Assembly: GCF_036588685.1 (NCBI RefSeq)
Contig: NC_086385.1
Coordinates: 23,211,216 to 23,275,215 of the forward strand
Origin: Mytilus trossulus
Lineage: Eukaryota
Reading direction: 5' to 3'
Length of the DNA stretch: 64,000 nucleotides
Position 1 is the first letter of the stretch; each line of letters begins with the position of its first letter. Shown piece by piece: positions 11,769-49,700 of the stretch. Below the pieces are notes generated by a model. The model made no database searches and was not told the DNA's origin. It saw nothing but the letters and a program-made list of their open reading frames with translations. The position numbers were made by a program, and so were the translations under genes.

Positions 11769-11846
11769 CAATCTCCGGCGCAGAGATCACATATCCGTTC
11801 CGTTCAATACTACGTAACACTACACTCAATATGACCTCTGCCATAC
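11769..11846 (+). repeat. AcademH left terminal inverted repeat
   Basis: The first 21 bp are the perfect reverse complement of 31621-31641; the match continues imperfectly to about 75 bp. Confidence 0.95.
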
Positions 11847-12155
11847 CTTTTTTTGCGTACTTTTTCTTCTCAATCTCTAAACAAAAATGAAATGCCTATG
11901 ATGACTTTTTTTATCAAAATTTAGCAATCAATCTTCAATTTTAAAAGAATAACAAAAGTTTTAATGAAATTTAATTAAAAAATTTATATTTATCAAATAA
12001 AAGCTGATTGTCGCACTTCTGTTATAGATTGTATTTCCTGTCAAATTATGTAAACAAAGTAGTCTGCAAAGGGATTATTTTTATTTCTGTAGCGATGTTT
12101 TTTATACATATTTCACTTTTTTTATGGATTTCTTCTTCAATTTAGATAATTTGAT

Positions 12156-15100
12156 ATGTCTTGCAATGCTTGTTATACCACAAATTCGTGGAGATTTCAT
12201 TCGTTGAAATCTGACCTTTTTTCTTTTTTCGACAAATTTACAAAGAATTTTGTATCAGTTTACATTCCAACTACCAAAAAACAAACATTGTGTAACTCCT
12301 GCTATTGTACGTTAAAGAAGTTGAAAGAGTGGAGTGAGAACATATACAGGTAACTCAAGTGCTTGAATTGTCTACATAATGAACATTTCCGTATACATGT
12401 ACACTAGTTATATTATACATAAATGTCTTTCATGAATTTGTAATCCATGACCATGTCTTATTAAATAATAATGATCTGGACCTCTGAAGTTAAAAGAAGT
12501 CTAATGAATAGCCCACAAAATTATTTTTTAATTTTTATCTAAAAAGCAAAATAAAAGGTGTAAAAAATATATATATAGTGCATGCAGTGGACCATGTTTG
12601 ACCAAGGAACTAGCCACTAAAGACTGTTATTTATCAGTAGCTATGCTATCTCTATTTAATATTGAACACAACATAGCTTGAGATAATTATTAATTATTCT
12701 TCAACTTGGTGTAACTGATATTCTTATAATCACATTCTTCGTAACATTGCAATTTTGCATGTTTGACAAACAGAACTTCTGATTTTCCTGACCAAAATTG
12801 AGTGGAGGTTTAAGTAAATTATATAGGTTAGCGATTTAGGCATTCCTAGCTATTTAAACAAGAACACAATTTTTTTTAAAGATTTAATTGTTTCTTCAAT
12901 TCTCTATGAAAAGATTGTGTAACTTATTGATGTTAATTTCTCCTTCCAGTTAAAATTGAAAGATACAAAAAATATTTATCATATGAATTACATGTACTTT
13001 ATCTGTTGATTTTCTTGTAGAACTGAGAGAATTAATACATTTAGTGATCATGCTGTGTTTCAGGAACAACATGTCAATCAATTGGTTACTGAAACAGGGT
13101 ATGTGTAGATAGTTGATGAATACGCATGAAATGTGGGGAAGGGTTCATGTCAACAATTCAGCTACCACTACACAAAAAAAAGACTTGAAAATACTAAAAT
13201 AAATATTATGAATATTAACAAACATTTATTGCACTTTTTGTACTTTTGACCTTTGTTTGATATTAGATAATTGGTCTCCATTGCCAATGATACACTAAGT
13301 GACATGATTGAAATCTTTTTGATTATTTAGCTGCTATTTAATATAAGACATAAATAAGACCTTTATTGATCTCAGTAGAATATTAAAGATAATATTATGT
13401 TGGGTAGCACTCAATGTAACAATATACAGTTGGACTATATAATTATTCAATTGTGAATATTGGTATATACTTATGTGCTTTCATCATGTTCATGTCATAT
13501 ACATTGCATAGTTCTAATTCTGATTTTAGAATTTCACCTGATCCACAGATAATTGATTGTTTAAGGAATGGTCACTTTGGTTCCATTGAGTAAGTAACTT
13601 ACCTTTATTATATATGTATACTGTGTGATTCATTAAATGCTAATTATTCATTTTATAAACATAGTACAGGTATAAGAGATTTTTTATTTAAATATTTCAA
13701 AATTTTAAAAGTTAAAACATTATAGGATATTTATTTAATTAAACCTTTTTGAATAATGAATGCACCTTTGCATTTTTTGTCATGTTTATTTCTAAGGCAT
13801 ATATATAGTGAAAGCTGTATAATGTATATATAATTACATATGCTATGGTTAAGATGGCTCTACTTACAAAATTCTACTTCGGCCAAATGAAAAAGTATGT
13901 GTGGTTCCAGTTACATCTGAAAAAAAGTTAGGGTAGGTAGTTAGGGATTTTTTTTTAATTTTATGGTTGTTTTTTTACATTGAGTCTATGGCATGTATGT
14001 GAGCAACATTCTGACTTTAATAGTGCTTAAAGAAAAATGACAATAAAATCTTTAGGGTAGGCTATTTTCAAGCCAAAAAAGTAGGGACGGTAGGGTTTCT
14101 GGAACCACACATATATTTTTATTTGGCCTTATAACAGGCTATAGTTTAAACTTGGAATAATTTTTAATAATGGCATTTGCATAATACAATGTGCATTTGA
14201 TTAATTTAGCTGTACAAATATATGTATCTAGTCAAGTGCTTGAAAATTTTGATAAATTCCATATTTATTTTGTACTATGATGTAAGAGAGTATTTTTCAA
14301 TAGAATGTACTGTGCCGCTCACAACAATATCTATACAAAATACAATGTATTAGAAGGGTTATGGACTGCTCAAAACAAATAAACAGAGAATTTATTCAAA
14401 AAGTAATACAATTATATTTGTTAGAAGTCTAGAACCTGGTCTATCACATACAGTTGGTCCAGCAGGGGATGCTGGCAGTATAGACAAATCAGAGTAAGTA
14501 ATTATCTGTAGGAACTTTAGAATAAGTGATGTCAACATATTTCATATTATATTAAAAGAAGATGTGGTATTATTGCCAATATGACATGTATGAGACAACT
14601 TTCCACAAGAGACAGATTGACACAAAAGAAATCACAGCTATACATGTAGGTCACTGTCAAGTCTTTAACAATGAGAAAAACTGTTATGGCATAGTCAGCT
14701 AAAAAAAGACAAAGTAATCACAAATGTAAACAATTCAATTGACAAAACTTATGGCCTAATCAAAGTGCAAAAAATAGATGAAAAACAATTATGGAGCACA
14801 GCAACAAACAGCCTCATTTAAATTACAGGATCTTGGCTTGGGACAGGAAAATTCAAACAGAATGTGGTTGGGTTGAAAATGTAACCAGGGACAGAGGTGT
14901 TACAGTACACAGTACATCATGAACATGACAAAAAAATATGGTCTACATGTCAATGAGATAGCTTCCGCCAATTAAAAAAATCATTTAGAAGCAATAGATC
15001 CATATCCTGTGACATACATAAATAACAAAGCTATTGAAACACCATTGTATATATGAATATGAACATGAATATAATATTATAGTTGATTGTTTAAAATGTA

Positions 15101-18100
15101 GTCTGAAAAGCAACCAACTTGCAAAAAAGTCCCAGGCACAAAGAATAATTGTAGGAAAAATGGAATTTTTATCATTTATGGGAATCTGAAGAAAAAAAAT
15201 ATCACCTATCATTTTGTACTTTTTTACATAATGTGAAATTACAATGAATTATGAGTATGCACATGTGGTTACATTCATATCAACAGTTTTATATAACTTT
15301 TTTCAGTATAAATGACACAGTTATTCCAGAGGAGGATTGCATACTATCATCAGGAGTAAAAAGATCTTTTACAGAGTATATATCATCTATATGTTTAGAT
15401 CACACTACAGCTCAGGTTGATTTTGCTTTGTCCACTCTTCCACAGTGTGAATTGGCACTGGGTGGGCAAATTCCAGCTTGTCCAGTCTGCCCACCAATAG
15501 GAGTGGGCATGTAATTTCTATTGATTAATCAAAAGACAATTTTTGCAAGTACAATCAATTGAAAAAAGCAGATAAGCATTTGTAAATAAGGAATATTAAA
15601 CAGTACTGTTATTAAAGAGTTGTCACCGTTAATTGTAGATTTGACGGTCACAAATGCAGTTTTATTGGCGACCGATATTTGCTGCCGTCAAATCAAAATT
15701 GATATTGGCAACTCTTCAACTACAGTACTGTTATTCTGGTTCTAATACATTTAAAAAATAAGATATGTAACAAGTTGAAAAAATGTATAAATTTGACATA
15801 CACAAAAAGTCAGCGAAACTTCATGAATATTTATGACCTATAAATGTCATTGATAAACGTGACGTCAAAGACTGTACATAATTTAAACTAGATCATTCAT
15901 GAGTTTGAATAAAGTTTATGCTTTCATAACTTTTAAATGCTTAGTATCTTGAAAATTTGATATGCAATAGTACTTCTATTTTTCAACATATATATCCTCA
16001 ACTCTCATACAAAATCTTGAAGACTTAAGTCAATGTCTATGAAATATCTTTTACTACCATTAAATGTTTATTTTTACAGTGACCATTCATATATCAACCA
16101 CAAAGGGCACAATACAAGTGATTCAAATGACCATGAATATTCCTGTAACTTGCACACAGAGGAGGATGAAGAAGATGATGAAGACGTCAATATTTTATGT
16201 CAGGATAGAATAAAACAAATATTAAAACTACTCAATTTAAAGAGTAATGCTGCATATGACTACCCAAGCATGTTAAGGACTTGTAGTCAGACAGATCTTA
16301 GCGAAAAAGACATCTTCATGAGCATTATTGAAGAAATGAAAACACGGTATTATTAACATCACTTCTAAAAATGATTTTTGATATGAAATATGGAGATTTT
16401 GCATGATTTTCAATGAAACTACTATATTGGTAGAGATAATTTGACTAAGATACAAACTACCTTCAACAATGAGCATAATCTTTACCTTTTAGCAAATGAA
16501 ATAAAATTTTTTATTAAAATACCAACAGTCTAATACATACATGACATACAACATCAATGATTCAAAATCACATGTGGCAGAAAAACAAAACAAATTTCAA
16601 TTGATTTATTCAGACAGATAGTTATAGAATTTTTAACATAAATATCTGCAAGAATAAATACTTCTTTGTAAGACATTATGCATTTAAACGTTATTTTCTT
16701 AAATAATGATTTCAAAAATTATTGTTCTTTTATCATGTTTGTCTCTGAATATTGAGGATGAAGATTGAATCATTATCTTTCTAGACCTGAAATCTATTTT
16801 GTGTACATACATTACCATTTAGAATACTACTTATTCAAATATTGAAATTCTTTGAACTTATATTTATTAATACATTTGTACTTAAATATTTAATATGAAT
16901 TCACTTGTATATTTGAATACCAATAGATGTCCACAACTGCTTGAAATACTGTTATCAGTATGTGTGAAGGATACGACAAAAGTTAATTTAAGGCAAATTA
17001 ACAGTGTTGCTGTTGCATATTCATCTCTAATGTTTGCTAGAAACAACAAAAACTCTGGTATACAAAGATGTATTACCCTGTTAGCTGTTAAAGGAGATGC
17101 AAATGATGAGGTACGAAAAAATCATGGTAATGTAATACAATATAGTTTGTATAAATGTCATATAACATACATTTTCTTCAGCAGGAGACCCAGTGATGAT
17201 TATTTAATGATAGGGGCTGATGTTATTGATGGAGTTTGGTTATTAAAGGTGGCACTTTGAAAATACAGCTGTTTCTCAAACCACACTTCTTTTGGGGAGA
17301 TCTAAAATATTCATAAAAAAATAATTGTGTTTACATACTGGTTCCCAGTTCTGATCTGTATGTTGCATCTAACAGAGACATATCTTGGGAATGTTACCAG
17401 TAAATATACATGTGCATATTGTTTATATTGAAATCTGTGGTAACCCTTCATTTGAGATACGGGGTAGCTAAGAAAATAAGTTTTACTTTAAAATCTGAGA
17501 AGTTCAAGGCATATAAACGTTGAAAATATGCCGCATACCGCTGTATTTCGACCTTTGAGATTAATTGAAGTGCATATGAACTTTAAATTCTTCGATAAGA
17601 TTTTTTTCAAAACTTCATAGTAAAAGTGTTACAGTTTTAGCCGCAAAAGGAGTTCCAACGGAAAATGCATTCTCAATATTTACAAAAATGCAACCTAAAT
17701 CTCAGTAAATTGAACAGCTTATGACTGGAATTGTACTCTATACCTAGATATTCTTAGATTTTATGATTTTTTACTGTTATGCCACTTGTTTTGCTCCCTC
17801 AATGCTAATTCATCTGTAACTATTACTGCTTATTGCCTAATCTTTCCCTTTTTGCTGTGTCTCAAAATATAAAATCTGTTTCTATATTCTATCACTAATG
17901 AAAGCAATGAATACAAATAGATTTTATGTTTTCCTTTAGGGCTGTTCCAAAAATAAATGTATGAGGGCACTTTTTATTTGACCCCACAATGCATGAATTT
18001 TTATTTGAAAATTTCCTTTAAATGGTAAAGTTATTAAACACTACCCATCAAATTGTATTTAAAGTGCCTTATGACCCCCATACAATTAATTCTGGAACAA

Positions 18101-21100
18101 CCCTTATTGTATACTGTAAATTCAGACATTGAACTGACTTATCCCATGAAAAAACAAATATGTGTCTAATTAGATTAATTATTGGAATTTCTATACAAGT
18201 TGATAATTATAGATATATGTACAGGATATAAGAAAACTAGTTATTTTTCTTTGATATATGGTTACCAAGTTGCATAAATCATAATCATTTCTGAATTTAC
18301 AGTATACTTTTGCTTCCCATTTAGGTTACAGCTTTACTTTCCTTTCACATTAACAAAATACATTATATGAAAGTCTGTATAAAATGGTAAATACACCTGC
18401 TGTATGTTGGTTCGAATCCAACTGCAGACAAAGCAATGTATCTTAGTATAGCTAGCTATTAACACTTAAACTGTGAAATCATTCTTATAAGCATTTTGGT
18501 ACTTTGGTAATATGAAAAATGTTATTCAATATAACATTTTCAAAATTCTTTTCCTATGATTCCATTTTAAAAAAAATGAATTCAATGAAAAATTACCTTT
18601 TATTATAAATTTACAATATTTCTGATTATCTGATTTTCAACTATTACTAATAAGGACAAATACATTTATTATTGATAAGAATGACTTCACAGTGCTTACT
18701 GCTATTTTTGGTGAAGGTGCATTATTAACTAGTTACAAATACATTAGTAATAATTGATAATGACAGCACTATTTCATACATGTTTTATTTTTAATTCTAT
18801 TTCATAGTTTATCAGAAGATTGAACAGGATGTCGTTAAGCCTTTCCTGTTCTGGAAAATTAAGAATTCTTGATAAGGCTGTACTTGCGTCACATAATATG
18901 CTGGTTGAAGCAATTCGTACAAACCCTTTAATGAAAATTACTGGGGATAACTTGGATATGTATATCAGAACAAACCACCAAAGGACAGACAATAGCAACC
19001 AGGATATACACTGGTTTGCCTCTAATGCATTTTTCACCAGACTTAATTACCAAAATCTTCCTGAAAACACACCAGAAGTTAGTCCAGTTTCTGTTGCTAA
19101 TTTTGTTAGCATGGTTCACTTGTTCTTAAATTAAGAATTTCTTTTTGAATTTGTTGAAAGCTGGAAGTATTATTTCTCATGGATTGTTATCTGATTATTG
19201 CTTTACATAGGCAGTAACTGTTTTAGTTTCCTTATCCAGCAATTAATTTAAAAAAAGAAAAATTCTATCCAAATCAATAATTATTTTTTTATGTAATCAT
19301 GACTTAAATTTAATCGGATACTGTGCTTTACAATATTATTCCTTTATTATAATCTATTGATTGATTAACAATTTACAAACAGTTAAGAAATGTAATTTTT
19401 TTATTCATACAAATTATCAGTCTGGAAATTAGGAAAATTAGTGTAATTGTAAGGTAGCATGCATTTATATATGTTTTACATTTTTTTACAACTTTAACTC
19501 ATAATTATTATTTTACACAACATGTTATTGAAGCCATTTTTGATGAGTTCTGTTTTTCACACTGATGTTTTCTTACAGGTGACATGTTCCAATTAGTGTT
19601 TGAGTCTTGTGATCATTATGTTCTTTTTTCTATTTAATGGGTTATCATATTTAAAAATTTGATTATTAAATTGTACTATTAAAGTGCAATTGAAAATATA
19701 TTTCAAGATTATAGTATATGGTGTAGGTGTAGTCCAGTTGATCTTGTCAATTTCAAGATGATTTTTTTACATTTTGGCTGTTCATGAATTATGGTACTAG
19801 ATGATTGGAAAATTGAATTCATTTGAAATTTTTATATTTTTCTTTCCCAGACTACCTTCAAACATTGTGCAAGTATAAATATCAATAAACTATGACTTTT
19901 TTTATAGGTTAGACTGAAAGACATAGATGCAGAAATGTTTGTATTAACTGGAGGGGAAACAATGAAGCTGAATGATGTAAAGAAGGTTTTGATAGGTCGT
20001 CTTCTATGTGACAGGGATGACTTTCAGTGGCTTAAAAATAAACTACCACAACATATACCACATCGGTACAACTTTAAATCTTAATATATGGGAAAAAAAA
20101 TTACAACTGTCCTCAATGGAATGGGTCTGAGTAGTACAAATGTGATTTCATTTTATGTTGTGAATTTATTTTGAACATATTTTTACATATTTTTCAGCAA
20201 ATCAAATGACTTTTGTTGTCCAGATAAATTTGGGATATAAATAAAATAAAATAAAGGATATGGTTAACTGACTTTACAGTATAAACTTTGCTCATGGTTG
20301 AAGGCTGACAGTGACCTTCATCTGAATATCTGTGTCAATTCATCTTTGGTGGACAGTTATCTCATTGGCCATCATCATACCACTTCTTCTTCAATTTTAT
20401 AAAAATAAGTTGCGACATATATAAAAACGAGAATCAAGTGATGAGAACTTATTTTGATCAGATTGCATCTTCTTTCATATAATGACACAAAACTGGTGTA
20501 TAACAAAACACAAAATGCAGTAGAATAAGGTTTTAATTGCTATTCTTCATTTCAAAATTAGTGATGACTTCAACATGAAGCAAATACTATCACCTAACTA
20601 CATCTATAATATCATATGGCTCCTAGCACTAGTTTGATTGGCTTTTATAAACATATTACATAAAAGAATTAAAGAAGTAACAGAAATATCATATCAATAT
20701 AGTACCTTATATTATATCGTAATACATGTATTTCATTTGGCATTTTTTAATTTTAAGATACAGTGACAGCATGTCAAAGAAACAGCATGTCTATACATTG
20801 AAAATAATGTTCAAGAATGAATCTAAAAATGAAGACTGTCTGGATATAATGGGCGAATACGAAGATCAAATAATTGATTTGCACACAAAGGCATATGGTA
20901 ATAAAGGCATTACAATGAAACCTGGCTAAACCAAATCCTACCTAAAACCGAAGACCTGTATAAACCAAAATTGTTCTGAAGCACGGTCATATCAAATTGT
21001 ATGCTTTCTTAATTCCTGTGGAGGTTCCTTTTTAAATAGGTTTCATTGTAGTATACCTTGCACACTGTTTATTACAGTTTTTCATATCTGATTTGGATTT

Positions 21101-24100
21101 CAGTATCCTTTCTATTATCATTTGCACTTTCACTTTCTTTCTTATATAAAAAAAAATGTTGCATTTGTTCATGATAGCCATCAAAATTCAATTGAAATTT
21201 AAAATGTTTTAATATTTTTAATATTCCTATTACAGGAAATACAGACAATTTAGATAAATATGGAGTAGTTTTAGGAGGAGATATGTTGACCAGGGAAAGA
21301 TTACAAAATGCTAAAAACATCACATATTTAGCTCCAACACCAAGGGGTAGATTTGAACATTTAGCCCCAGTCACTTGTGAACTTTGGCATGTGAAGCAAG
21401 ATCTTCTATCTGTATGTTTTATTGTATTCATACCTAGTCCCTTAAGCAATTTTGATATCACCAAGCATTCTGAGTGCAAGGACCATAACTCTCAACAAAT
21501 TTGTAACTTTATCTGTTACTTGTCATCATAAATCAAGATACCAAATTTCAAATCAATATCTTCAAGCTGTAAGAAAAATTGTGGAAAAACTTATTTGACC
21601 AAATGCAAAACTAAAGTCCATTTAAACTTTATGCTCATTTTGTTTCTTAAATTATGCACTGTACTGGCATCAATTTTCAAGTCTATTTTTTTTTATTTCA
21701 CCTAAGCGCATACCTAATATTGTATTAAAAGGATTTTAAAAAACAGAATTGAAGTTATTTTAACATTGTCTTTATGTCAATTTTTTAGAAAGCATATAAA
21801 GCCTTATATAAAATTGATTCATTGGGAGAGTGTGGAACTTTGTTTCACATGAAGACAGCATTAAGGAGGAATGATGTGAATGGAAATGTAAAGTCCAACT
21901 ACAAAGCCCATGAGGAACTATTTCTGCTGATTGTGAAAGCATTAATTCACGTAGCCTCAGATGAGATAAGGGATTGCAAAGAACAGAACAGAGACGTTGT
22001 CCTTAGTAATGTTTTTTCAAAAATTTATGGTTTGTATAAAATAATGATTTCCATATAATTATTTCATTGGTACGATAGCAAAACATGCAAAAGTTATTAG
22101 CATAAAGGGACAACCCGTGGTAAAATCTAGATATATTCAAGCCCCCATGAATTATTTCGATTCTAATAGGACAAATACGGCTACTTTTTTGGATCGAAGC
22201 GCCCTAGGTGGAGGCCATTATTTGCCGTTCCCATAAATTCACGCACTTTTAGATTGGCGTAAAAGAACGGAGCAAACAGAATAAGTGACATGCTCAAACT
22301 ATTCACAAAACTTATAAAGATAGATTTCGATGAATTTTAATGATAACTTACTTAAATATGCCTTCTATGTATAAAAAAAATGGGCTTATACCACATTTTT
22401 GCATCGTTTGTTTACGTTTCCTTGTTGTGATGATTTTCGGTATCAAAAGCGTGTATTTTCCCGTAAAATGCTTAAATTATAACGTCATCATTCTATGACG
22501 TCGGGTACTTCATTCATTAAAAAAACATATGACGTGGGAGTACGATCGGAACAGCCAATGCAATATATTCATATTTTACCACGGGTATGTACTCAAAGCG
22601 TTTGAAGGACGTCATGTTAGAATACTTTACATTTATGTTCATGGAATGTAAAGATTTCAAATTCTACCTGGTAAGAATTCTACTGACTGTGACAGAACCA
22701 TGAAATCAAGTATTACACATTCTCGGAAAATTGATTCCCAAGAAAAAAAGTTGAGTCTACACTATTTAGAATAACAAATTTAAAAATAAAAAACTGGAGG
22801 CTTTCCTATATAGATATAGGAAGATGTGGTGTGAGTGCCAATGAGACAACTCTCCATCCAAATAACAATTTAAAAAGTAAACCATTATAGGTTAAAGTAC
22901 GGCCTTCAACACGGAGCCTTGGCTCACACCGAACAAAAAGCTAAAAAGGGCCCCAAAATTACTAGTGTAAAACCATTCAAACGGGAAAACCAACGGTCTA
23001 ATCTATATAAACAAAATGAGAAACGAGAAACACGTATATATTACATAAACAAACAACAACTACTGTACATCAGATTCCTGACTTAGGACAGGTGCAAAAT
23101 GTACACCTAATGACCAAGCTAAATAAATTGTAGGAATGACCTGGCAGATATACATAATATATGAAAACCTATTGGTTACCTTCTGCTGTTGTCTGTTCTA
23201 TGGTAGGGTTGATGTCTCTTTTACACATTCCCAATTTTCATTCTCAATTTTATATGAAGAAGATGAATGGTTACAATTTATAAAACTGTTTGTGGATGCA
23301 AATGAATATAAACAGTTATTTTTTAGGTCTAGGATACAGCACAGATGATTACATTTACAACTACTTCACAAATTTAATAACCTGGGGTATTCAAATAATT
23401 AACATGAATGACACAGCAAAGGAAGGGGACATGGAGAGACTTATAATGAATATGAAGGAAAATGCAGCCTTTTTTTTACAGCCACTCAGTAATGAGCAAA
23501 TATTTTTCTGAGTGCGTTAACACCATCTTACAAGTACAGCACCTATCATCCCCTCATATGAAAATGAGACAGCTAGAAGGGGCATTCATTAATACCAAAG
23601 GAGGTTCTGGTAAAAACAAAGAAGCAGACCTGGTGCAGGAGCATGCCATTAGAAATCAGAAGGACTTAATAAGAGGTTTAGGTAAGAAACATAGACTTAG
23701 CCTCCAATCACCCAAGTATTGTTACTGTAATTGTACTTCTGTATAAAAGTTTCCTGTTGGAATTATCTCCCTTATACCATTGACCTAACTTAAAAAAGGA
23801 GTTGCTTCATATTCTTAATTAATTTATTATTTTTAAACAGTTTCAAATTTAATATCTAAATATATGGGATCCATATTGTCTTAATGATTGAATTTGTATA
23901 TAACTATTTGTAACAACACACAATCAGGATAAATTTGTAAGGTGGGGTGATGTGAACCTGATAATTTTTCGCTACATTGAAGACCTGTTGGTGACCTTCT
24001 GCTGTTGTTTTTTTATTTGGTTGGGTTGTTGTCATTCCCCATTTCCATTCTCAATTTTATCATATTATACAATTGCACACTATGAATCTAATATTGCTTA

Positions 24101-24592
24101 CGGCCAATTAAATCTATTAAAAAGGGCTAATATATTACTTTCATTACTGTACTAAACAGTAAGATATTGGGAGTAATACATTCAGACAAAAGCTTGAACA
24201 GTTTCATAATATAAAGAAAACATCAGTCACATCTGTATTACTTATTGATCTTAAAGTTGAATATAATTTTTATTAATGTAGGAGCAAATAAAACTGAAAA
24301 TGGTTCCAGGAGAGCTAGCAGCTCAGCAGACATCATCCATCGAATAGGAGACAATGTAGACCATCTTCTTGGTATACCTAAATTCACATCAAGCCATGCC
24401 AAGAAAACGTCATCTAAAGATCTGGAAATTGCTATAAACATTTTAAGTAAAGTTCAGCCATTTAAATATGTTAAGGGTAGGAAATTTGAAAGTTTTAAAA
24501 CAATACAAAAAAATCCAAAACTAATTGTTCAAAGGAAAGATCTAATACATGCCATCCATAAAAAAATTCAGAGGTTATTTTTAAATTCATAA
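12156..24592 (+). CDS. Academ (DUF6589-like) DDE transposase, 14 exons, about 907 aa; one +1 frameshift in a T8 run
   Basis: Phase-consistent GT-AG exons: 12156-12349, 13021-13098, 13512-13589, 14425-14493, 15307-15510, 16080-16346, 16927-17110, 18808-19077, 19908-20065, 20758-20897, 21236-21411, 21789-22029, 23327-23681, 24282-24592. Motifs: N-terminal CxxC..CxxC, ITGDNLD, GGDMLTRER, ELWH, KEGD, SKY, NTKGGSGKNKEADLVQEH, LGANKT. One extra T at 23470-23477. Exons 2-5 are less certain. Confidence 0.82.
13881..14128. mobile_element. MITE in transposase intron 3
   Basis: Imperfect TIRs of about 28 bp: GGCCAAATGAAAAAGTATGTGTGGTTCC and GGAACCACACATATATTTTTATTTGGCC. Confidence 0.7.
17936..18106. 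mobile_element. MITE in transposase intron 7
   Basis: Imperfect TIRs of about 30 bp: TAGGGCTGTTCCAAAAATAAATGTATGAGGG and CCCCCATACAATTAATTCTGGAACAACCCTTA. Confidence 0.65.
18373..18430 (+). ncRNA. tRNA-like structure, copy 1 (58 nt), transposase intron 7
   Basis: Acceptor-like stem GTCTGTA/TGCAGAC, a stemless D-like loop containing TGGTA, a 5-bp arm ATACA/TGTAT with a 5-nt loop, and a T-arm GTTGG-TTCGAAT-CCAAC. Confidence 0.6.
22807..23100. repeat. Abundant SINE-like interspersed repeat
   Basis: ATAGATATAGGAAGATGTGGTGTGAGTGCCAATGAGACAACTCTCC...ACTAGTGTAAAACCATTCAAACGGGAAAA is nearly identical to 34271-34453. Related copies lie near 14555, 42335 and 55790. Confidence 0.75.
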
Positions 24593-24959
24593 TTTTTTCT
24601 ATAGTGTGTTTATAGTTTCATAGAAAATCAGGTGCCTATATCTACTGAACTTTGTGTTTCTATTAAAAAAAAAATTAGAATAACTTATTTACTGAATGTC
24701 AATAGCATATAAGTCATAACCATTAATTTTTCAATGCATGTAAATTTCTCTCCACTAATATTGAAAATGAAATGAAGGTAAAAGCAATTTTCAGTTAATT
24801 TTACTTACACATTACAATAATTTAATGTTATTTTTGAAACTAGATATATGCCGAAACAGTGGTCTAAAATACCAATAAACATTATGTAAATGTTACTGAT
24901 GATTATACTGGTGCTATTTTTACCTTAAAATCAATCATTACTATAAAATATTGGGGATT

Positions 24960-25830
24960 GAAGAAACAACTTCATTGTTGTTTTATAGATTTTAAAAGTG
25001 TTTTTGACAACTTGAATACATTTTTTTTATATCATAAACTTGCTAAATGTGGTATTAGTGTAAGTTTTTTTCCATTATTAAATCTTTCTATGATATTTCA
25101 ATGACCTGTGGGAAATTTAAAGGTGAATTTTCTAATATATTTTCTGTAGAAAAAAGAGTATTACAAGGGGAATCATTATCAACCATACTATTTTTTTTTT
25201 TTTTATGATTTTGAATATTAGTTTATTTTATAGCTTATTTCTGTTTTACCAGTAGACACGAAATAGCTGTCATTGTTTATATTGATGTTTGTTATATTTT
25301 CTGAGAGTATTGATGGGTTGTAAAATATGTTGAGTATTCATAATGTATCAGATAGAAAAATAAAAAAAAATCAGTTAGAATTTTGTAAATATATTTATAC
25401 TATTAAGAAATCCCCTGCTACAGCAATGGTTTATTCTGAGTTGGAAAGATTTCCTTTACTTATATGTTAATCAGTAAAAATATCCAAATATTGGATTTGT
25501 CTATTACGAGTCTGAATCAGGAAATATGTCATCATGGGTTACTAATGTTAAACCTATGTTGCTTAGCCAAGGTTTTGGGCATGTATGGTATGCACAGAAT
25601 TTTGAATGCGAAGAAGCATTTTTTATTCAAACTAAGGTTTATTGACCAAAAGGGAAATATGCTTTTCGATTCATCATCAAAATGAACGATCTATAAATAT
25701 GAAGTGGATAACTGTTTAACTGACATTTTTTTCACAAATAAGTTAAGTCCACAATGTATCAGATTTTTAACTAAATATAGTCATTTCCTAAGGGGAGGTA
25801 AATTAGTTCCCAATGTTTTGTATCAATTAG
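24960..25830 (+). pseudogene. Highly degraded LINE (RT) remnant between the AcademH genes
   Basis: 25156-25192 reads RVLQGESLSTILF (RT motif QGxxLSPxLF); a later segment reads AMVYSELERFPL. Many stops and deletions. Boundaries are approximate. Confidence 0.5.
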
Positions 25831-27420
25831 AATTGACATTCTAAAAAAGTTGAGTGTAAATTCTTCTTCAATAGATCAGGAATGGCTAATATCTGCATTG
25901 TTAATAAAATTATAGTGAGCTATGTTTATAATTTATTATTATTATTTAATGTGTCTCTCCATGTCCCTTTCTTGTGTAATTTTAATCTGTACGGTGTGAA
26001 CCATATTCTTTCATTGAGGCCTTTTTTGTAAAAGAAATACCTAATTTTGATCCCTGCATGTAATATAGTTCAAAAATATATAAAATTGTTATTTCCTATA
26101 AATCTACCTACAGTTTATTATTTTAATGCTATTATGTGTTTATGCATTTGTTGTTCAAGATTCATTGATTGTAATAACAAATGAAATTTTAAAATTTATT
26201 CAAATGTTGGTCTGCTATATTTATCAGTCTATTATTATTCTATTATTTACACTTTGAGAAAAGCGCAAAAAGAATTGGAAGGCAAGAAGATGAAAAAAAA
26301 GATGAATTGATAGAAAAAGATTTTTTTTAGAAAAAAAATATGTAATATATATATTTAAATATTTTAACAGTGACTTACGTTGAATCGCATTTACACTAAA
26401 AAAAATATTGTGATTGCCTTCATTTAATGGTTTAAAGCAACTACATCTCATATAAAAAAAATTGGAATGGAAAAATACATCCTTGATAATTGTTATATGT
26501 TAATATATAATTCTTTCAGTGAAAGAAAAGATTTACATTGACTGTGATATTTTTATTCATTATTGATTATGAAATAAACTGTGATATAAACTGTGATATT
26601 GACTTGTAATGTATGTTTAATGAACAAAAAAAGAAATCCTCCCAGAATATTTTTAGTCATCAAATCTGGGTTTCTTTTTATTTGTAATTATATGAATTAT
26701 ATAAGTGAAAATTTTTGATTAAATCAAATGTATAGTCTTAAAAATTAATTTGAATGACTTCTTCTGAAAAGGGATCATATTAGAAGTTGAAATGAAGGTA
26801 TAAGTATGTTATTACAAGTTGAAGCAAACTGTAATCTTTTTTTTAATCAGAAGTTTTGAGAAACATTAGTTTGTGCCAAGGATTATTAAATTGATTTTTG
26901 CTATGATTTATTGTTCATTACTATTTTTAAAATGATGCATGAAATTATTTCTTTGGGTGCAGATGAACTGTTATGAAAACCTTTTTTAGGGTAGCAAAAG
27001 GGTTTTAAGATTAAAATTACTTAAACTAGAACAATAAAGTAATATTAATGTATTGAAATGAAAACCAAAATGTTATCATTGGATTTTTATTTCACTCAAA
27101 CTAGTATGTCTTGTATACATAAATAGATTATTTATAAGCTATTAAACCTGTGCACTGAATGGTTAAAGCATAACTATCTCCAAGAAATGAACTTTTATCA
27201 TTATTTATTTGATATTTAAAAAAAAAAAAAATTTGAAATCAATTGTAGGTTTTGAATACATTGTCTCCTAATATTATGATTAAATGCTGTACTTATATGC
27301 TTTTTGTATTACTTGAAAATAGAATAAAATTTGTATATGAAAAACGATTTTTTATTTCTATTCCAAAGTTTTGAAATTAGGATTGGGATGGGGGTTGAAG
27401 TTTGAAGGGTTATTGCCTAT

Positions 27421-30400
27421 TTACAATTCCATTCTCAACATCTCACATTCAATACAGGAACATATTGGTTTACAGTTGTTACAGCAGATATGACCCTTTA
27501 CATCTGTTTTTTCAAAGCCATACTGCTGTAGTAGGTATTCTCGAATGCAACCCTTTTCCCTACAAAAACCAATAATATCAGGCTTGATATCAACTACATT
27601 AGCAGCAATATCCCTATTGCTGTAATAAAGAACAGCATTGGCTGCATTCCCTGAACGACCAGCACGCCCAATCTCTTGGACATAATCTGACAGTGATCTT
27701 GGTGGACGTGCATGGATGACTCTCATAATTGATTGAGAATTAAACCCCATACCCACAACTGAGGTGCAAAACACAAGTTTTATCCTTGGGTTTACACAAG
27801 CCAACTCTTTAATTATATAATTTTTTACACTGTCATCCTGACCACTGCAGAGAACACCGTATACAGATGTTTCAAGGGTAGGTTTCTTGAATATATGTTT
27901 GCAGTAGGCAGCTGCATTGCCTATATACTGTAATGGCATAAATAACAAAGTAACTGGAAAAGTTTCCCTATTTTCAAACAAACTGTCACAAAGTGGCCTA
28001 TATATATTTTCATAGGACTCATAAATATCTAGGGATGCCTCTTTAAGTTTGATTTCCAGTAAAATGTTTTCCCTATCAGGACTTTCCTTAATAACTTTTG
28101 GATTTTTTATCCCTAAAGAACTAGTAACCGCCTTCTCTTCTTGTTTCGTGACAGTGGCACTAAGTCCCAATCTGGGTACTCCTGGAAAAAATCCTGGAAG
28201 CTCTTTCAGGTGTTCAAAAGCTTTCCTGAAGGATCTCCCCCTATTCATAAAAAAAGAAGTAATGATCATGCATTTTGATAATAACCATTTAATAAATAAA
28301 GTTAAATACACCACCACCAAATAAAAGGGATATAAGCAATATGAAATCATTTTTCCCAATAAAACTCTGATTTTATTAAATATGGTGTTAAAATTTGTGT
28401 TCTGTATTTGTTACAATTTTTGTTATCTACATGAAATAAATTTGAAAGAAAACCAATGAATCTAATAATCCAAGAATGAATAATATGATATTATTCATTC
28501 TTGGATTATTATTAATATCTATTATATTTCAAAAACAATACAGGTCACAGATAATTGGAAAAAATGCATTCACAGTGGAATGTTAATAGCTGAAATAATA
28601 TACATTGTTTGTCCGCAGTTGGAATTGAACCAACATACAGCAAAGTGTATTACCCTATAGATACAGACTTCTTTATAATGTATGTTGTTAGTAAGGGTGA
28701 GATAAAATGTAAATAAAAAATTAAGATAAAAGCATTAATTACTAAATGTTAACAAAAAGCTTTAAAAAACCACATTAAAAGCTTATACTAGCTGCATTAT
28801 AGAAGTTGACAGTGGATGAAAACAGGAAATTTAACCAGAAGCTAAAACATGTAAAATGCAGATATGCACTGAAAATAAATTAATAAAAAATAGGTCACCC
28901 AAGATCAATTTTACTTATTGTTAAGTTAAAAAAATGTCTTGCTACATGTTGCAGATAAATTCCATTAGGCCAACTGTAAGGAGTTTTGCTAGAAGTAATA
29001 AATATACAAAAAACATATACATTACTGGTAAGTCTTAACATTAGAAATGGAAATACATACCTTGCTTTCTCTTTTATACTTACATTATCTGTTTAAAACA
29101 TTTCAAACAGTATCAGTAAAATCTGATTCATGTCAAAATGTGAACTTTAAATCAATGGTAATATAAAAAAACAAAAACAACAAAATATTATTGAGGTTAT
29201 ATAAGTAATATTGATTTTTAAAATTGAAAAAAAAAAATGCCAGATCTTGAGAACAAGTTACAAATTTGATAAGAAAGGTGATAAGCCAGACTTTACTTTC
29301 AAAGAAATGACCAATGCTTGATAAAATATATAAACTATGTTAATCATTGACCAATATACAGGGTAACACACAACCAGGACAAAAGCTTAAAGAATTACGT
29401 TTAAATTGTTTTATAAAGTGTAATAGATGTCCATTAATGTCACCTAAAAAGTATGGAATGTTACCAGTATTTATTTATATATTCAATACATTTTGCTATT
29501 GTCCAGCAGAAAAAAGTTGTCAAACTGAATCTGAAATTAAAATACAACTAGAGCTGAAACGTACCAATCTGCAACTTTATGACATTCGTCAATAAAAATT
29601 GCCTTCACTGAAGATTTGAAACTACAAGAAATATAAAGTAAGAAAAACATGGAATTTTACTATTGACTGTTTTGGCCACTTGAATGTATTTTAAATGCAC
29701 ACATAACGTTGTTCTAAATTCATATTAAGATCAAAATTCTCAGTTCCATTATCATTATTTGTTGGCAAAATTTAACACGAATTTTCTGTAAATGGTTTTC
29801 AGAAAAAAAATGTGAAAAACTAAACTCTAAGGGATTGCTTAATTTTAACCAGACTGCAAAACCAACATTCCATTTTTATAGCATTATTGCTTTAAAGAAC
29901 AATTTAACATGGGAAAGAAGTGATGCATAAGTCAAAAATCTTTTTTTTTTAATTTCTTGATTATTTTTTCTATATATAATTAATACATGCATATAAATAG
30001 TTTAATACCTAGAGGAATCCAAGATATCATTTCCTTCTGAAGTACAGAAGAAGGCTTCTGGATGAGCAAATATTAAGTTACAATTGGATATATCTGAAGT
30101 ATCTATATCACACTTAAGATCTTGGATATTTTCCTCATTCCCTGCAGTCAACAGTCTTCCCTGTGGAATAAAGGAGCACAGTTAAACTATGTAAAACTAC
30201 CTACCAAGAATTATTAGATACTGAAACAGAAGAAATTAAATACATGTGTAGCCATCAATCAAGAATCATGATTTATGAATCTAGATTTTATCAAATTCAT
30301 GCCCCATTCAATGAATCAGAAACTACTTCTTGACGAAACCAAATACTTTTGAACATATGATACATGTACATGTAACTACAAGATTTAGAACAACCTTATA

Positions 30401-31485
30401 TATATATATGCATGTATATGTATAACCTGCAGTTGACAACTTGAAATATTAAGTACAGTATTTGAGTAAAAAAAAAAATTAACAGGTGAGCCATGCATAA
30501 GCATGTAACTGGTACCAGATTAACATGAATATCTCAAAGTCTTCAAATATCAGTTAACTTTAATTTGGTATGTTAGTAAAACTGTTTCGTCCCGGCCAAG
30601 GGTACTCATCAGGTGCCTTAAGGCTACCACTACAGTCATCTGTTACATATACATTTTTTTTAACTAATTATAAGAACAAATGGTATTAGTTAGTGATCAT
30701 CTCTTTGCACTCATATTCTGAAATATTTCACTTAAGAGATCTTTTAGACCTTAAAAAAAATATTTGAGGTGTTCATAAGGGTCTGTGGAGTTCAAAAAGT
30801 GGGGTGTTATAGACGTTTCTTTTCTGTTATCTGTAGATATTTGGACTCTTAGTCTTCTAATTTGTTGAATTAATAATTGGAATATTATAAATAAGTACCA
30901 ATTTAAACGATAAAAGTCAAAATAATAAACTTTTTTGGTGTTCGGTGGTGTGCGGTGGTGAAAAGACCTACCGGTTTATTTTGGCACCTTCTGCAGGAAA
31001 GAAAAAACTGGAAAGCAAAATCTAGTAAAGTTTTTAAAATTTCTGAAACGTTTACTTTAAAATAACTTTTATATATCTGCCATGCCTTAAAACTTTCCTA
31101 GATGTACCAGTTTCTCTACTCAAATAGTAAATTTTTAGGGGTAAACACGGCCATATTTTTAAATTCCTTATGATGAACCTGAAGAATAAGAGTAGATTTT
31201 TACCCTGGTATTTAATATACAACATTTCAGTGCTTCTGAGTTCTTCAACTGTTTTACTTGCTCTTCTTGGATGACACTGAGAGGTGAAAAAACAATCACA
31301 GTGCCGTCCAAGATTAGCGGAGCCAGTTGGTATATGAGGCTCTTTCCATAACCAGTTGGCAAAATCGCTACTGTTTCAAGTGTTCCTTTTCTGATTTCGT
31401 CCAACACTTCAATTTGTTTAGGTTTCAGTAGTATGTTAGGATGACCAAGTCCAAGACGTCTAAGCGGGATTTCGTAATCCGCCAT
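27421..31485 (-). CDS. RecQ-like SF2 helicase of AcademH, 4 exons, 436 aa, intact
   Basis: Exons 31485-31204, 30160-30009, 29621-29565 and 28240-27421 splice in frame (1311 nt). Motifs: LPTGYGKS, SPLSVI, AHPE, FIDECH, WGRSFR, LSAT, CTSVVGMG, YVQEIGRAGR, and a C-terminal CIR...CCNNC Zn-binding segment. Confidence 0.92.
28463..28511. repeat. Perfect 24-bp inverted repeat with 1-nt spacer
   Basis: TAATAATCCAAGAATGAATAATAT-G-ATATTATTCATTCTTGGATTATTA. Confidence 0.95.
28610..28668 (-). ncRNA. tRNA-like structure, copy 2 (59 nt), helicase intron 3
   Basis: The minus strand reads GTCTGTA TCTATAGGGTA ATACA CTTTGC TGTAT GTTGG TTCAATT CCAAC TGCGGAC A. The stems match copy 1; differences fall in loops or give a G-U pair. 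Confidence 0.6.
30581..30636 (-). ncRNA. Type III hammerhead ribozyme in helicase intron 1
   Basis: The minus strand reads ACTGT-A GTGGTAGCCTTAAGGCAC CTGATGA GTACCC-TTGGCC-GGGAC GAA-ACAGT. It has a complete CUGANGA/GAAA core, a GUA cleavage triplet, closed stems I and II, and an open stem III (ACUGU/ACAGU). Confidence 0.8.
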
Positions 31486-31566
31486 TTTTTACAAATAGCC
31501 CTTTCACCGCCTTAGATACTTCCGCTTGTCCGCCATGAGGAAATTTCCTCATGGAGTCAGCCAATC

Positions 31567-31641
31567 GTATGGCAGAGGTCATATTAAGTGTAGTATTGCG
31601 GAGCACGTAAGGAACGGATATGATCTCTGCGCCGGAGATTG
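31567..31641 (-). repeat. AcademH right terminal inverted repeat
   Basis: Reverse complement of the left TIR, followed directly by the TSD ATGGTAATG. Confidence 0.95.
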
Positions 31642-32222
31642 ATGGTAATGCTGCTCAACTAGTGCTCTTGCTTGACTCCATTGTGGACCATTACAAACAA
31701 GACCATAGAAACTGTCATCAAACATCTAGATACAAAAAAAATGACTATGTGCCGTCGCGAGATATTATTCGGGATCCAACAGCCGAGTTGTTGCTAAGGA
31801 ACAGTATAAAAAACCTTTATATTTATAAGCATCCAGAAAAGTATACTCATTGTCGTGACACTCATTATATTGAGAGTTATCATAATACAATTCTCATACA
31901 TGTGGATAAAAGGTTACATTATCATAATTTAATGTATGAAATTAAGTTGGGACTATCAATACTTGATTGGAATGAACATGTTGATAGACCTGCTTCATCA
32001 GTACAACACCGTGTGCAACATGACCATCCACGTCGACAATCTGGATATCGGGTTTTGACACCAAAACAATATACTTTTACAGATGAATTATGGAATAACT
32101 TTGTAAATCTGTTAAATCATGACCGCAATGACCAAATTGAGCCCGATGATGTTGAAAATGTTCAAATAGACCAAAATGATACAATTGGTAGTGAATATGA
32201 AGATTCAGATGATGATGAGTAA
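31642..32222 (+). pseudogene. Kolobok-type DDE transposase, 3' part
   Basis: Continues the 5' part in frame once AcademH is removed: GNAAQLVLLLDSIVDHY..DH..CH...RDTHYIESYH (catalytic E)...DKRLHY...LSILDWNEHVDR, ending in an acidic tail. Confidence 0.8.
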
Positions 32223-33798: not shown

Positions 33799-34144
33799 GG
33801 TGGAGATTTATTTCCCCGAGGGTATCACAAGCCAAGTAGTCAGCAATTTTTGTGCTGACATGAATTGTCATTAATATGGTTATATTTATCAATTTAATTT
33901 ACTGTTTACAAATTTTTGAATTTTTTGAAATACTAAGGCTTTTCTACCTCAGGCATAGATAACCTTAGCTGTATTTGGCAAAACTTTTAGGAATTTTGGT
34001 CCTCAATGCTCTTCAACTTAAAGTTCGTACTTTATTTGGCATTTTGAACTTTTTGGGATTCGAGCGTCACTGATGAGTCTTTTGTAGACGAAACGCGCGT
34101 CTGGCGTATATACTAAATTAAGTCCTGGTATCTATGATGAGTTT
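33799..34144 (+). repeat. About 350-bp dispersed repeat carrying a minimal type I hammerhead (retrozyme-like)
   Basis: Homologous copies at about 43205-43540, 47600-47735 and 58064-58270. Degenerate inverted copies near 41380-41680, 49495-49660 and 54690-54965. Confidence 0.85.
34065..34106 (+). ncRNA. Minimal type I hammerhead ribozyme (intact core)
   Basis: CGTCA CTGATGA GTCT-TTTGT-AGAC GAAAC GCGC GTC TGGCG, with a palindromic short stem III and a GUC cleavage site at 34101. Confidence 0.85.
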
Positions 34145-46700: not shown

Positions 46701-49700
46701 TTTGGTTTAGCGTGTGCATGTGGTTTGAATAAGGTATTCCGTATGTCTGTTTTATAATATATATATATTTTATTAAATTTAAACTTTAAAACAAATGTTT
46801 TCTCAAATATACATGATATAGTCTTACCGTTCTAGACAAGCATCCTAGTTTGTACAAAATATTTCCGGAACTTTCAAACTTTTCAATGCTACAAATCTGA
46901 AGAATACAAGACATCATTTGTAATTTTGATTGTAAAAGACTTTTGATTAGAACAAAAACGGCTTTGTTCGACCCGTATACGATTTTGAAAAAACACCTAT
47001 GGAATAGGTAAGAATCAACAGTATTTAAAAACGTCCAAATTTCTTTAAACCAGCTTTATTAGTATATTAGTTGTATTTTTTTGTTTATAAAGTCCGCGTT
47101 CATGTAATGCTAACATACACGAACGCAACAGCTCAAATATGTCATCTAAAAAACAAACCGTTTGCCAGATTGTTGTTTTATATACTGATTATTTAGTAAC
47201 TGACGATGAAAAACTTATTTTATCATGTCACGTTTGTCAGAGGTCCAGCTGAAAGTCGAGATCTGAGTCTAACATCAGAAATGTAGTACGTCCTTAAGAT
47301 ATGTTAATATTTGATAACTTAGTTCACTTGGTTACCTGAGATTTCAGACATCTGGAAGATTTCTCTATGTGCCTGTGAAAAGGTTGTATGTATTTTGATC
47401 GATAGAAAAATTGACGAGCAATAGTGTTTGTACAATGTTTATCATTTATCAAAATAAATGTATGCTGAAGTAAAACAACTAGACAAATTTGTTTAATTAG
47501 TATTTTTCGTTTTAAAACATCGCATTTAGAAAATGAAAAAAAAAAAAGTCGGGTGTTAGTGGTAAACGATTACAGTAAAAAAGCCCAAAAGAAATAAATC
47601 GCTTGAATAACGACTTTTACAACTTCGATTTAATGATGCAACTTTTGGGATTTGAGCGTCACTGAAGAGTCTTTTGTAGACGAAACGCGCGTCTGGCGTA
47701 TATAATAAAGTTAGTTCTGCTATCTATGATAAGTTAATTTTCATGTGACGATGTTATTTATCAATCAATTTGATAGCTTGTAGAGTTTTGTAAGGCATTG
47801 ACAATCAAAACTGAGGAGTTAACAAAGAATCATAAAACCAAAAGACATTTACATCAACAGTTACAATTCAAATTATAAATAAGGAACAACATGAACTCCA
47901 CTAAAAACCGAGAGGGAAATAAGGTGCTCTTGAAGAGTAAGTTTTTCCGGCATCGTATATGGCACCCGTCGTGGTATGTCTTTGATCAGTTTGGAAATAT
48001 TGGAAGGTTATTATGACAGGGGAAGAATATCAGATATGATTTCTGACAAACTTTTGTCATTATGACCAATCAGCTTATGATGGCGACCGTAAAATATCTT
48101 AAGAAATGACCTTAATTCAATTGATTCATAAATATGTAATCTACTTACTGATCCTGACATGCATTCAATTGTGTGGTCGCAAAACAAAGGATTCATAACT
48201 GAATCACAGTTCAAGCAAGTTAAACCTGCAATAGACAAATCAAATTGATACATCAAGTGGTATAGAATTAACACAATTATATATATAAAGAAAGTGTCCG
48301 GTATATGCATATTTTCTGATGTATTGATTGATTTGCATATTGTCATGACTACTCATATGATGCATGTGATGAGAAGCATCAAGCACAATGTGGGCAGTGG
48401 GTTAAACAAATCAATTATTACGTATCATTTGTATTCGTTAAGCATTTGATAAATTATAAGAAACATCTAGTGCCCTTTTTGTTAAAGAAACACAAGCTGA
48501 CGAGTCTTCACAGTCGAGTTTAAAGTTAAGTATGTGAAAAAGTGGTATAAAGAGTTGTAAAATCAAACCTTGTTTTTGCAAAGGAGTTAAGATTGTGTTT
48601 TGAGAGTAAGGAGATGATTAGCGGTATTTACTGTATCATCTTCCATATTTGTATCTTTTTACCACAATACGATTTTGCATGGACGTAGTTTTGTATATTA
48701 TTGATCGCCGCGATATAGCCTTTTTGTGCTAATGTGGCATAAAGCAACCAACAATCAATCAATCAATATATTATTGATACGGCATATCTTAATCTTTATA
48801 AAGCTTAATTCATTTCGTGTTTTCCCCAGCCTGAATACTTTGGAAATAAGGGTATGCCATAATCACTTATTATTTAATTGTACAGCTAATTAAATTACAT
48901 TGTTAATTGTTGTCTAAAGTCTATTCATATTTATTTTTATATATTTATTATATATTTAACTATAGACAACAGAAGCCACACGTATACTAAATTATCGAAA
49001 CAATATATAATGAATATATATTCAAACAGATTTTCACACATACAAATAATGCAAAACGTGACTTGGTTCGTGCTAATGATTTTGCGTTGTCTATGTCAAG
49101 GCAATCCGTGAATGAAATCGATAATTTGATAAACATAATGGTGAGTTTTTTTACCGAAATTAAAAATCTGCAATATTTGTATGTTAAACGGATACACATT
49201 TCACATTCTGAGTGTCTTGATTGTTCTTATATTTTAATACTACTTGCTTATTAACGAAAAAAAAATTGCTCGAATAAAAAAACGTGAAAAGAGCAAGTGT
49301 TTTGTAATTGAAAGATATTTTTAAGTGACTGTGTATTAAAGCATTGTTTGCGTTACATGTATATTTAAAAGTTGAAATTATTGATATGTTAAGTTTTATA
49401 ATTACCTTCAACTAACGTTCTCTCGCAAGCCAACATCAACAATATCACTGTAAAAAATGAAGTAATTGTGCTAACTTCAATCACTTATGATTTAATTCAT
49501 CATAGATAACAGGGTTAAATTTTATATTTACGCCAAACGAGCGTTCCGTCTAAAAATGACTCGAATCAGAAAAAGTGAAAAAAAGCCAAATCAAGTACGA
49601 AGTTGAAGAGCATTGATCACCAAAATCTATAAATAAAAGTTTTGCCAAATACAGCTAAGATATCATTTTTTTTTAATGAAAATCCATACTTTTTTTTTTG

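Follow-up and report, generated by a model that had tools for sequence, protein, structure and literature searches.

Putative type III hammerhead ribozymes in genes of cut-and-paste transposons of the mussel Mytilus trossulus

The roles of most genomic hammerhead ribozymes are unknown, and the cases described in animals are nearly all of type I and belong to retroelements or to a few host introns. What, then, is a type III hammerhead motif doing in an intron of a DNA-transposon gene? The question is raised by a locus of the mussel Mytilus trossulus, a stretch of 64,000 nucleotides (nt) from contig NC_086385.1 (assembly GCF_036588685.1, positions 23,211,216 to 23,275,215 of the forward strand), which is referred to here as the window. 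It contains a complete AcademH-type transposon (11769-31641) with terminal inverted repeats and a 9-base-pair (bp) target-site duplication, and an original prediction made from the letters alone had assigned a type III hammerhead to an intron of this element's helicase gene. In this work, we describe the motif, its relatives in the same genome and the genes in or near which they are located. The motif is a member of a family of about 30 copies of a ~58-nt hammerhead in this genome. We put the probability at roughly two in three that this is a genuine type III hammerhead family, that its copies have the orientation of the cut-and-paste transposon genes which they lie in or closely precede and that it was inherited within helicase intron 1 in the AcademH clade of the window element.

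The motif and its intron

The motif occupies 30580-30637 of the minus strand. From 30636 to 30581 this strand reads ACUGUA|GUGGUAGCCUUAAGGCAC-CUGAUGA-GUACCCUUGGCCGGGAC-GAAA-CAGU and contains all invariant hammerhead nucleotides, including the A15.1-U16.1 pair (30585 with 30632). The core is composed of CUGAUGA (C3-A9, 30606-30612), which is kept across the family, and of GAA (G12-A14, 30588-30586) together with A15.1 (30585; 30585-30588 in total), as assigned from the sequence and the family alignment. The cleavage triplet of this copy is GUA, and cleavage is predicted after A17 (30631) and before G1.1 (30630). Helix III consists of 6 bp including one G-U (30637-30632 with 30585-30580). Helix II and loop 2 (30589-30605) comprise G10.1-C11.1, a U-A pair, a bulged A and three C-G pairs, and helix I and loop 1 (30613-30630), delimited by alignments and folding, have just 3 canonical pairs (GUG/CAC) followed by a G-G mismatch. 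Loop 1 carries GCC at 30624-30622 and loop 2 carries the complementary GGC at 30597-30595. The topology is that of type III: the two ends of the motif meet in the open helix III, and loops close the other two helices. The full core, the GUA site and the type III topology that had been claimed for 30636-30581 of the minus strand were thus all recovered, as were three stems, of which helix I is limited to its 3 canonical pairs, and the proposed cut between 30631 and 30630 agrees with the core numbering.

Taken by itself, the motif could be chance. The Rfam model Hammerhead_3 (RF00008), proposed as a check with the original prediction, aligned end to end to 30638-30579 of the minus strand, and the score was 20.9 bits (E 0.054 in a 401-nt search), below the gathering score of 48.5. 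In an Rfam scan of the window, the motif was reported neither at the gathering level nor at E<=1 over the whole window. On the scale of a whole-genome search with RF00008, about 40 chance matches of this strength are expected per 1.3-Gb genome, and the predicted fold energy of the motif is ordinary (z -0.2 to -0.8). These values speak for a hammerhead-like string that arose by chance in AT-rich intron sequence. The window also contains two type I hammerhead matches (34064-34107 and 47656-47699, both on the plus strand; RF00163, 32.5 and 33.6 bits, gathering score 34). They share no sequence relation with the type III family, as had been stated for the motif at the outset.

The position of the motif on the sense strand of a helicase intron was borne out by RNA and splice sites. 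An RNA contig (run X1) joins 30160 to 31204 and skips intron 1 (30161-31203, 1043 nt), which has GT..AG borders on the minus strand. The corresponding junction, ...ILNTR|GRLLTAG..., is also found in the annotated Mytilus proteins P0002 (M. galloprovincialis, 98%) and P0003 (M. coruscus, 87%), which are closely related helicases. Within this spliced intron, the distances of the hammerhead to the donor and the acceptor are 567 and 420 nt, respectively.

Conservation in sibling elements and across the genome

Two siblings of the window element, C5:55424114 and C4:41786215 (lineage D), have both genes in common with it. Their helicases are 67-69% identical to that of the window, and in each of them intron 1 contains the hammerhead on the sense strand. 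Between the window and lineage D, the exons are 74-79% identical at the DNA level, with values of 0.77, 0.86 and 0.49 for codon positions 1, 2 and 3, respectively, and of 0.50 for 4-fold degenerate sites. The intron parts flanking the hammerhead, compared by anchored segment alignments, give scores no higher than those of shuffled sequences (z -2.0 to 1.2), whereas the hammerhead itself is identical at 50 of 56 positions (0.89) and is thus more conserved than even the second codon positions of the exons beside it. By our own arithmetic, the probability of at least 50/56 matches at a neutral identity of 0.5 is about 5e-10. The 80 nt downstream of the hammerhead show a faint similarity to lineage D, the score of which is reached by 13 of 500 shuffles and which would fit one old insertion.

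The closest paralogue of the window element (C1:76116789) also has the motif in this intron, so that all clade copies which keep intron 1 carry it (4/4, one decayed). Conservation in other AcademH copies, on which the original prediction had been made to depend, was therefore found. The possibility raised with it, that the motif belongs to a dispersed repeat which is missing from the siblings, had a mixed outcome: the family is indeed dispersed, but the siblings do not lack it. More distant helicases (57-60% identical; C19 and C7:516, with introns 1 of ~3.5 and 2.1 kb) gave no match in searches that yield lower bounds, which is weak evidence of absence. The best reading of these comparisons is that in the D/E AcademH clade the hammerhead has probably been kept almost unchanged by purifying selection while the rest of the intron diverged.

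Contrary to the idea that the motif is a peculiarity of the helicase intron, it is part of a dispersed family found in several transposon settings and in repeats of unknown kind. A search of the genome with 261 nt around the motif gave 28 further places with 85-95% identity, the match being limited to the hammerhead. A covariance model (R1) built from an alignment of 19 copies gave about 29 strong matches in the genome and matched the window copy with 81.2 bits; these copy counts are lower bounds. Comparison of nine sequence contexts gave an identity of 0.90 (0.83-0.95) for the hammerhead block, whereas the adjoining 60-nt flanks reach 0.57-0.60, which is taken as the background for unrelated AT-rich 60-mers under that alignment. 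The edges of the conserved block coincide exactly with helix III.

Core, site and helices are intact in 16 of about 28 distinct copies, and the others bear the usual marks of decay, namely a site changed to GUG, the substitution C3U or G12A, or a disrupted helix I. The cleavage triplet is GUA or, in lineage A2, GUC. In intact copies the minimum free energy (MFE) fold is the canonical three-way junction, and RF00008 scores are 29-36 bits, 35.7 bits corresponding to a genome-wide E of about 0.003. A U-G pair of helix I is replaced by C-G in lineage C, and two mismatches of the ungapped helix II register are replaced by pairs in lineage D. The complementarity of GCC in loop 1 and GGC in loop 2 is invariant (18/18 distinct copies), and the loop 2 sequence UUGGC is as invariant as the core. 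This fits a Watson-Crick contact between the loops, as we infer, although invariance alone proves nothing; contacts of such kind have been reported for about 40% of hammerheads (PMC3088659). An origin by chance, to which we give almost no weight, is excluded because there are about 30 homologous copies, because their conservation is limited to the motif and because diverged siblings have it in the same intron.

The copies stand alone. A second hammerhead of the family was found neither in any of 10 loci of 20 kb nor in the window, and the 1.5 kb to each side of the copies are free of tandem repeats of the motif. A retrozyme is defined by at least two hammerheads in direct repeat which delimit a releasable unit; as the 10 kb to the left and right of the copies in the 10 loci contained no second one, a retrozyme-like arrangement was ruled out. 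An origin from a tRNA or polymerase III transcript was likewise rejected, ARAGORN calling no tRNA. A single module around all copies was considered too, but the downstream ~290 nt are common to family A alone, with a doubtful 66% match to lineage D. The exact degenerate pattern of the family was not found in collections of metagenome and viral contigs.

The search for another class of ribozyme around the copies gave stray type I matches in loci L002 and L003 and nothing else. In L003 (region of G000:C5:51494766), a type I hammerhead (L003:1801-1844; RF00163, 34.5 bits, above gathering) lies 240 nt downstream of an intact type III copy (L003:1499-1558) and has the same orientation, the two predicted cut sites being about 335 nt apart. 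In L002, two type I matches on the minus strand (2413-2456 and 2659-2702, ~246 nt apart) lie opposite to the decayed type III copy; the pair resembles a retrozyme-type tandem inserted near the C1 paralogue. The whole-genome search with RF00008 also returned matches of 36-39 nt at 30-37 bits in about 60 places (e.g. C14:68398658-68398693 and C11:23561341-23561378), which seem to constitute a distinct and numerous family of minimal hammerhead-like motifs.

Transposon contexts and possible function

Apart from helicase intron 1, the hammerhead is found in two further settings within AcademH elements. Lineage A2 comprises four copies that are 98.7-99.8% identical, with DUF6589 and helicase matches nearby except for the truncated C4:80511776. 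Because the hammerhead lies here between a 136-amino-acid (aa) open frame and the exon which starts the DUF6589 domain, on the same strand, it can be placed in a putative transposase intron. Lineage C has two copies (99.2% identical, one maybe a haplotig) in which the hammerhead has the orientation of the transposase gene and precedes its first exon matched with confidence by 3.4 kb. The hammerheads of A2 and C are intact, and the near-identity of the copies, counted in support, suggests recent activity of these AcademH lineages. An A2-like AcademH relative (C8:25138832-25141537, plus strand) has a single 992-aa frame over DUF6589 positions 61-410, where the A2 copies are split; no hammerhead was near it among the matches listed, and the intron content of these transposon genes differs between lineages.

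Lineages B and B2 belong to an unrelated superfamily, PIF/Harbinger. Their hammerhead is again on the transposase strand and precedes either the start codon of a THAP + DDE_Tnp_4 gene, by ~790 nt, or a DDE open frame, by ~2.5 kb. One of these loci (L041, region of G000:C7:58805314) holds a PIF/Harbinger-type element with a THAP-like N-terminus followed by HTH_Tnp_4 and DDE_Tnp_4 (L041:872-2505, plus strand) and a convergent YqaJ-like exonuclease open frame (L041:3649-4599, minus strand); the ~790-nt spacing refers to this locus, where the hammerhead is a U-U variant. The remaining lineages A1, A3, A4, A5, L003 and L016 are situated in repeats of unclassified kind. On the minus strand of L038, ~2.1-3 kb upstream of an A5 copy (region of G000:C6:61920240) and opposite to the hammerhead strand, GIY-YIG-like and reverse transcriptase C-terminal-like frames are present which, judged by eye, are typical of Penelope-like elements.

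DUF6589 matches occur in roughly 65-70 places, an estimated ~0.1% of the genome, and nine hammerhead copies at 3 separate positions are found within about 11 kb of DUF6589 or AcademH helicase matches, which is far more than expected by chance. A transposon gene could be identified in four contexts, namely helicase intron 1, the putative transposase intron, the region upstream of the transposase and that before the Harbinger start codon, and its strand is that of the hammerhead in each (4/4, p = 1/16). This same-strand placement is no more than suggestive.

If the motif is catalytic, the following course of events can be envisaged. Upon transcription of the transposon gene, the ~58-nt RNA would fold into a three-way junction, probably stabilised by the 3-bp contact of GCC in loop 1 with GGC in loop 2, and would cleave itself 3' of GUA or GUC. 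In type III hammerheads with loop contacts, monomers are fast and efficient in cleavage (PMC6155905). The pre-mRNA would be severed inside the intron in kinetic competition with splicing, and mRNA output would be lowered or gated; the 420 nt before the acceptor make such a timing plausible. For the intronic CPEB3 ribozyme, competition with splicing has been shown to reduce expression (PMC10919898), and we infer a possible effect on helicase output by likeness to this case; the original prediction had supposed that cleavage limits this output. In its strongest form, this leads to the proposal that DNA transposons repeatedly took up a loop-paired, single-unit type III hammerhead which purifying selection has kept as a sense-strand device that cuts the pre-mRNA and throttles or times the helicase or transposase. 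AcademH elements would have it at three positions in or upstream of their genes and PIF/Harbinger elements upstream of the transposase, and it would be intronic where a gene model can be drawn. We regard this proposal as possible but tentative, with the odds clearly against it as it stands.

A number of observations weigh against a genuine hammerhead family in transposon genes or against its proposed action. Every copy scores under the Rfam gathering score (best 35.7 versus 48.5), that of the window with 20.9 bits included. The youth of the family and the similarity of its copies leave little covariation; one pair has changed on both sides, and shuffle controls are not decisive. The C1 sibling copy has a decayed core. 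The spliced exon 1-exon 2 RNA indicates that the ribozyme does not block splicing, and helicase expression is very low in four RNA runs, with intron 1 free of any read coverage. Moreover, at helix I position 2.4 (30616, minus strand) a G is found in the window copy, in contrast to the C of all other copies, its own paralogue included. In its MFE structure the register of helix I is moved by two positions and the core base C3 is paired. Folds compatible with activity, modelled by forcing the core unpaired and the three junction pairs formed and by secondary-structure energetics only, lie 5.4 kcal/mol above the MFE and make up a fraction of ~1.6e-4, compared with 0.27-0.42 in three intact relatives and 0.07 in A2. 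The intact relatives have 5 bp in helix I versus 3 canonical ones in the window copy. Because the C-to-G change at 2.4 favours the shifted helix in which C3 is paired, the window copy is probably slow or inactive despite its intact core.

Two further points of this kind concern the mobility of the motif: about half of the copies lie in unclassified repeats with no identifiable transposon gene nearby, and the differing positions in differing elements mean that the motif moves, which a selfish passenger would explain equally well as a recruited device. Such a passenger would be a small mobile module, possibly a retroelement remnant such as a Penelope-like tail or a solo retrozyme-like unit, which lands in tolerant transposon introns. 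It would owe its conservation to its own propagation or to the youth of its copies and would render no service to the host transposon. The spread over AcademH lineages and PIF/Harbinger agrees with this explanation, as do the module of family A (an A-rich tract, the hammerhead and about 290 nt) and the type I hammerhead downstream of the L003 copy. We nevertheless consider it rather unlikely. One hammerhead per 20-kb locus, never in tandem or as a dimer, releases no unit-length or circular RNA, and most contexts have just the ~58-nt hammerhead in common and no common module ends. In the D/E clade, the hammerhead has remained 89% identical in the same intron although neutral sites are saturated, and the weak downstream similarity mentioned above favours a single old insertion. 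Intronic passenger insertions would generally be expected to lean antisense, whereas the hammerhead is on the gene's strand in all four contexts. The enrichment near AcademH genes is likewise far above chance.

The Harbinger lineages raise the last objection. They conserve U-U at 10.1-11.1 and may be poor catalysts, and yet their hammerhead is ~97% identical while the flanks are 73-78% identical, so that the conserved function may exceed catalysis. It could be supposed that the ~58-nt block is conserved as a protein-binding or structural RNA or as a DNA element and that the core is a relic; the invariance of UUGGC in loop 2, equal to that of the core, can be read in the same way. The form of the conservation makes this quite improbable. 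The edges of the block are those of helix III, and all 11 core nucleotides, A15.1-U16.1 and a permitted H17 are kept in 16 copies. Changes in helices I and II keep or improve pairing, and the invariance of the loops is the expected product of a tertiary loop-loop contact (PMC3088659). The lack of an ARAGORN call also speaks against a tRNA-like structural RNA. A genuine type III hammerhead family on the strand of transposon genes remains our preferred reading, at the odds given at the beginning.

The host element is described here for completeness. Its left terminal inverted repeat (11769-11846) pairs with the right one (31567-31641), which is 89-96% complementary to it, and the target-site duplication ATGGTAATG is present on the plus strand at 11760-11768 and 31642-31650. 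According to the passage of PMC10045372 which cites Kojima 2020, a target duplication of 9-10 bp and a helicase are marks of AcademH. The minus-strand gene is composed of several exons and encodes a RecQ-like helicase (Pfam DEAD and Helicase_C), annotated relatives being named RecQ helicase. Its exon 1 has a coding part of 94 codons with a GxGKS motif (31204-31485; Pfam DEAD, RNA contig). Exon 2 (30010-30160, 3' end approximate) was placed by the RNA contig and comparison with Mytilus proteins, and exon 3 with the DECH box (29564-29625, limits approximate) by that comparison. The last exon (27421-28239) contains Helicase_C, motif VI and the stop codon, as placed by Pfam, and an RNA contig ends at 28239. 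A second, convergent gene on the plus strand, putatively that of the transposase, has a Pfam match to DUF6589 alone.

Two inverted copies (18351-18432 and 28608-28690, 78-91% complementary), one each in the transposase and helicase genes, hold a GGTTCGAATCC-like box; they are probably the tRNA-like copies noticed along with the original prediction, and ARAGORN calls no tRNA in 27000-32000. An open frame of 200 aa (31620-32222, plus strand) starts in the right terminal repeat and target duplication, runs outward and has no Pfam match; it may be part of a gene interrupted by the AcademH element. Elsewhere in the window, 59438-59482 (plus strand) matches the histone 3' UTR (untranslated region) stem-loop (RF00032, 30.8 bits versus a gathering score of 34).

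Comparison with known systems

In the literature searchable, nothing relevant was found that links hammerheads to Academ, Harbinger or other DNA transposons, nor on a type III hammerhead family or a single-unit arrangement of this type in a bivalve. The statement of the original prediction that no ribozyme had been reported in an Academ element is consistent with this: no paper linking hammerheads to Academ was found there. The ribozyme class is thus a known one, and what appears new within the searchable literature is the bivalve type III family, its single-unit arrangement and its residence in genes of cut-and-paste transposons. If the strongest form of the proposal is true, a ribozyme class would for the first time be linked to DNA transposons and not to retroelements. 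The associations of ribozymes with mobile elements would be extended to cut-and-paste transposons, and the family would also offer a small and testable model of how an intronic self-cleaving RNA affects the transcript that carries it. For annotation, motifs well under the Rfam type III threshold can be real given conservation at the level of the family.

The type III hammerheads of plant long terminal repeat (LTR) retrozymes, viroids and satellite RNAs (RF00008) have the same topology and core and a GUA or GUC site, and there, too, a single unit should suffice. In contrast to these, the mussel family is from an animal, occurs once per locus, neither as dimers nor in LTRs, and permits no circular RNA. 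Its copies are inside DNA-transposon genes, all of them score below gathering, and a Watson-Crick contact between the loops is likely in place of the usual non-canonical set.

In mammals, a discontinuous type III hammerhead is located in the 3' UTR of Clec2 (PMC6155905), likewise in an animal mRNA precursor and with a presumed cis effect on expression. It differs from the mussel family by its position in the 3' UTR, by a helix I of 150-1500 nt and by its host genes. The ultraconserved intronic hammerheads of amniotes (RECK and C10orf118/CTCL; PMC6155905, PMC3088659) are similarly on the sense strand and form islands of conservation in diverged introns, a role in mRNA biogenesis has been proposed and is unproven in both groups, and C10orf118 also appears to use a pseudoknot. 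The amniote ribozymes are of type I and occur in single-copy host genes, whereas those of the mussel are of type III and occur in transposon genes in about 30 copies. The HDV-like intronic ribozyme of CPEB3 (PMC10919898) provides the working model, in which co-transcriptional cleavage of an intron competes with splicing and lowers output; it belongs to a different ribozyme class, is located in a mammalian host gene and is experimentally supported, whereas the mussel family is known from sequence. In the non-LTR retrozymes and Penelope-like elements of mussels (PMC7229834), type I hammerheads of the same genus are likewise tied to mobile DNA. The retrozymes described there are of type I, number about 5000, form tandem repeats of 350-390 bp and give rise to abundant circular RNAs, whereas the present family is of type III, counts about 30 copies, is never in tandem and resides in DNA transposons.

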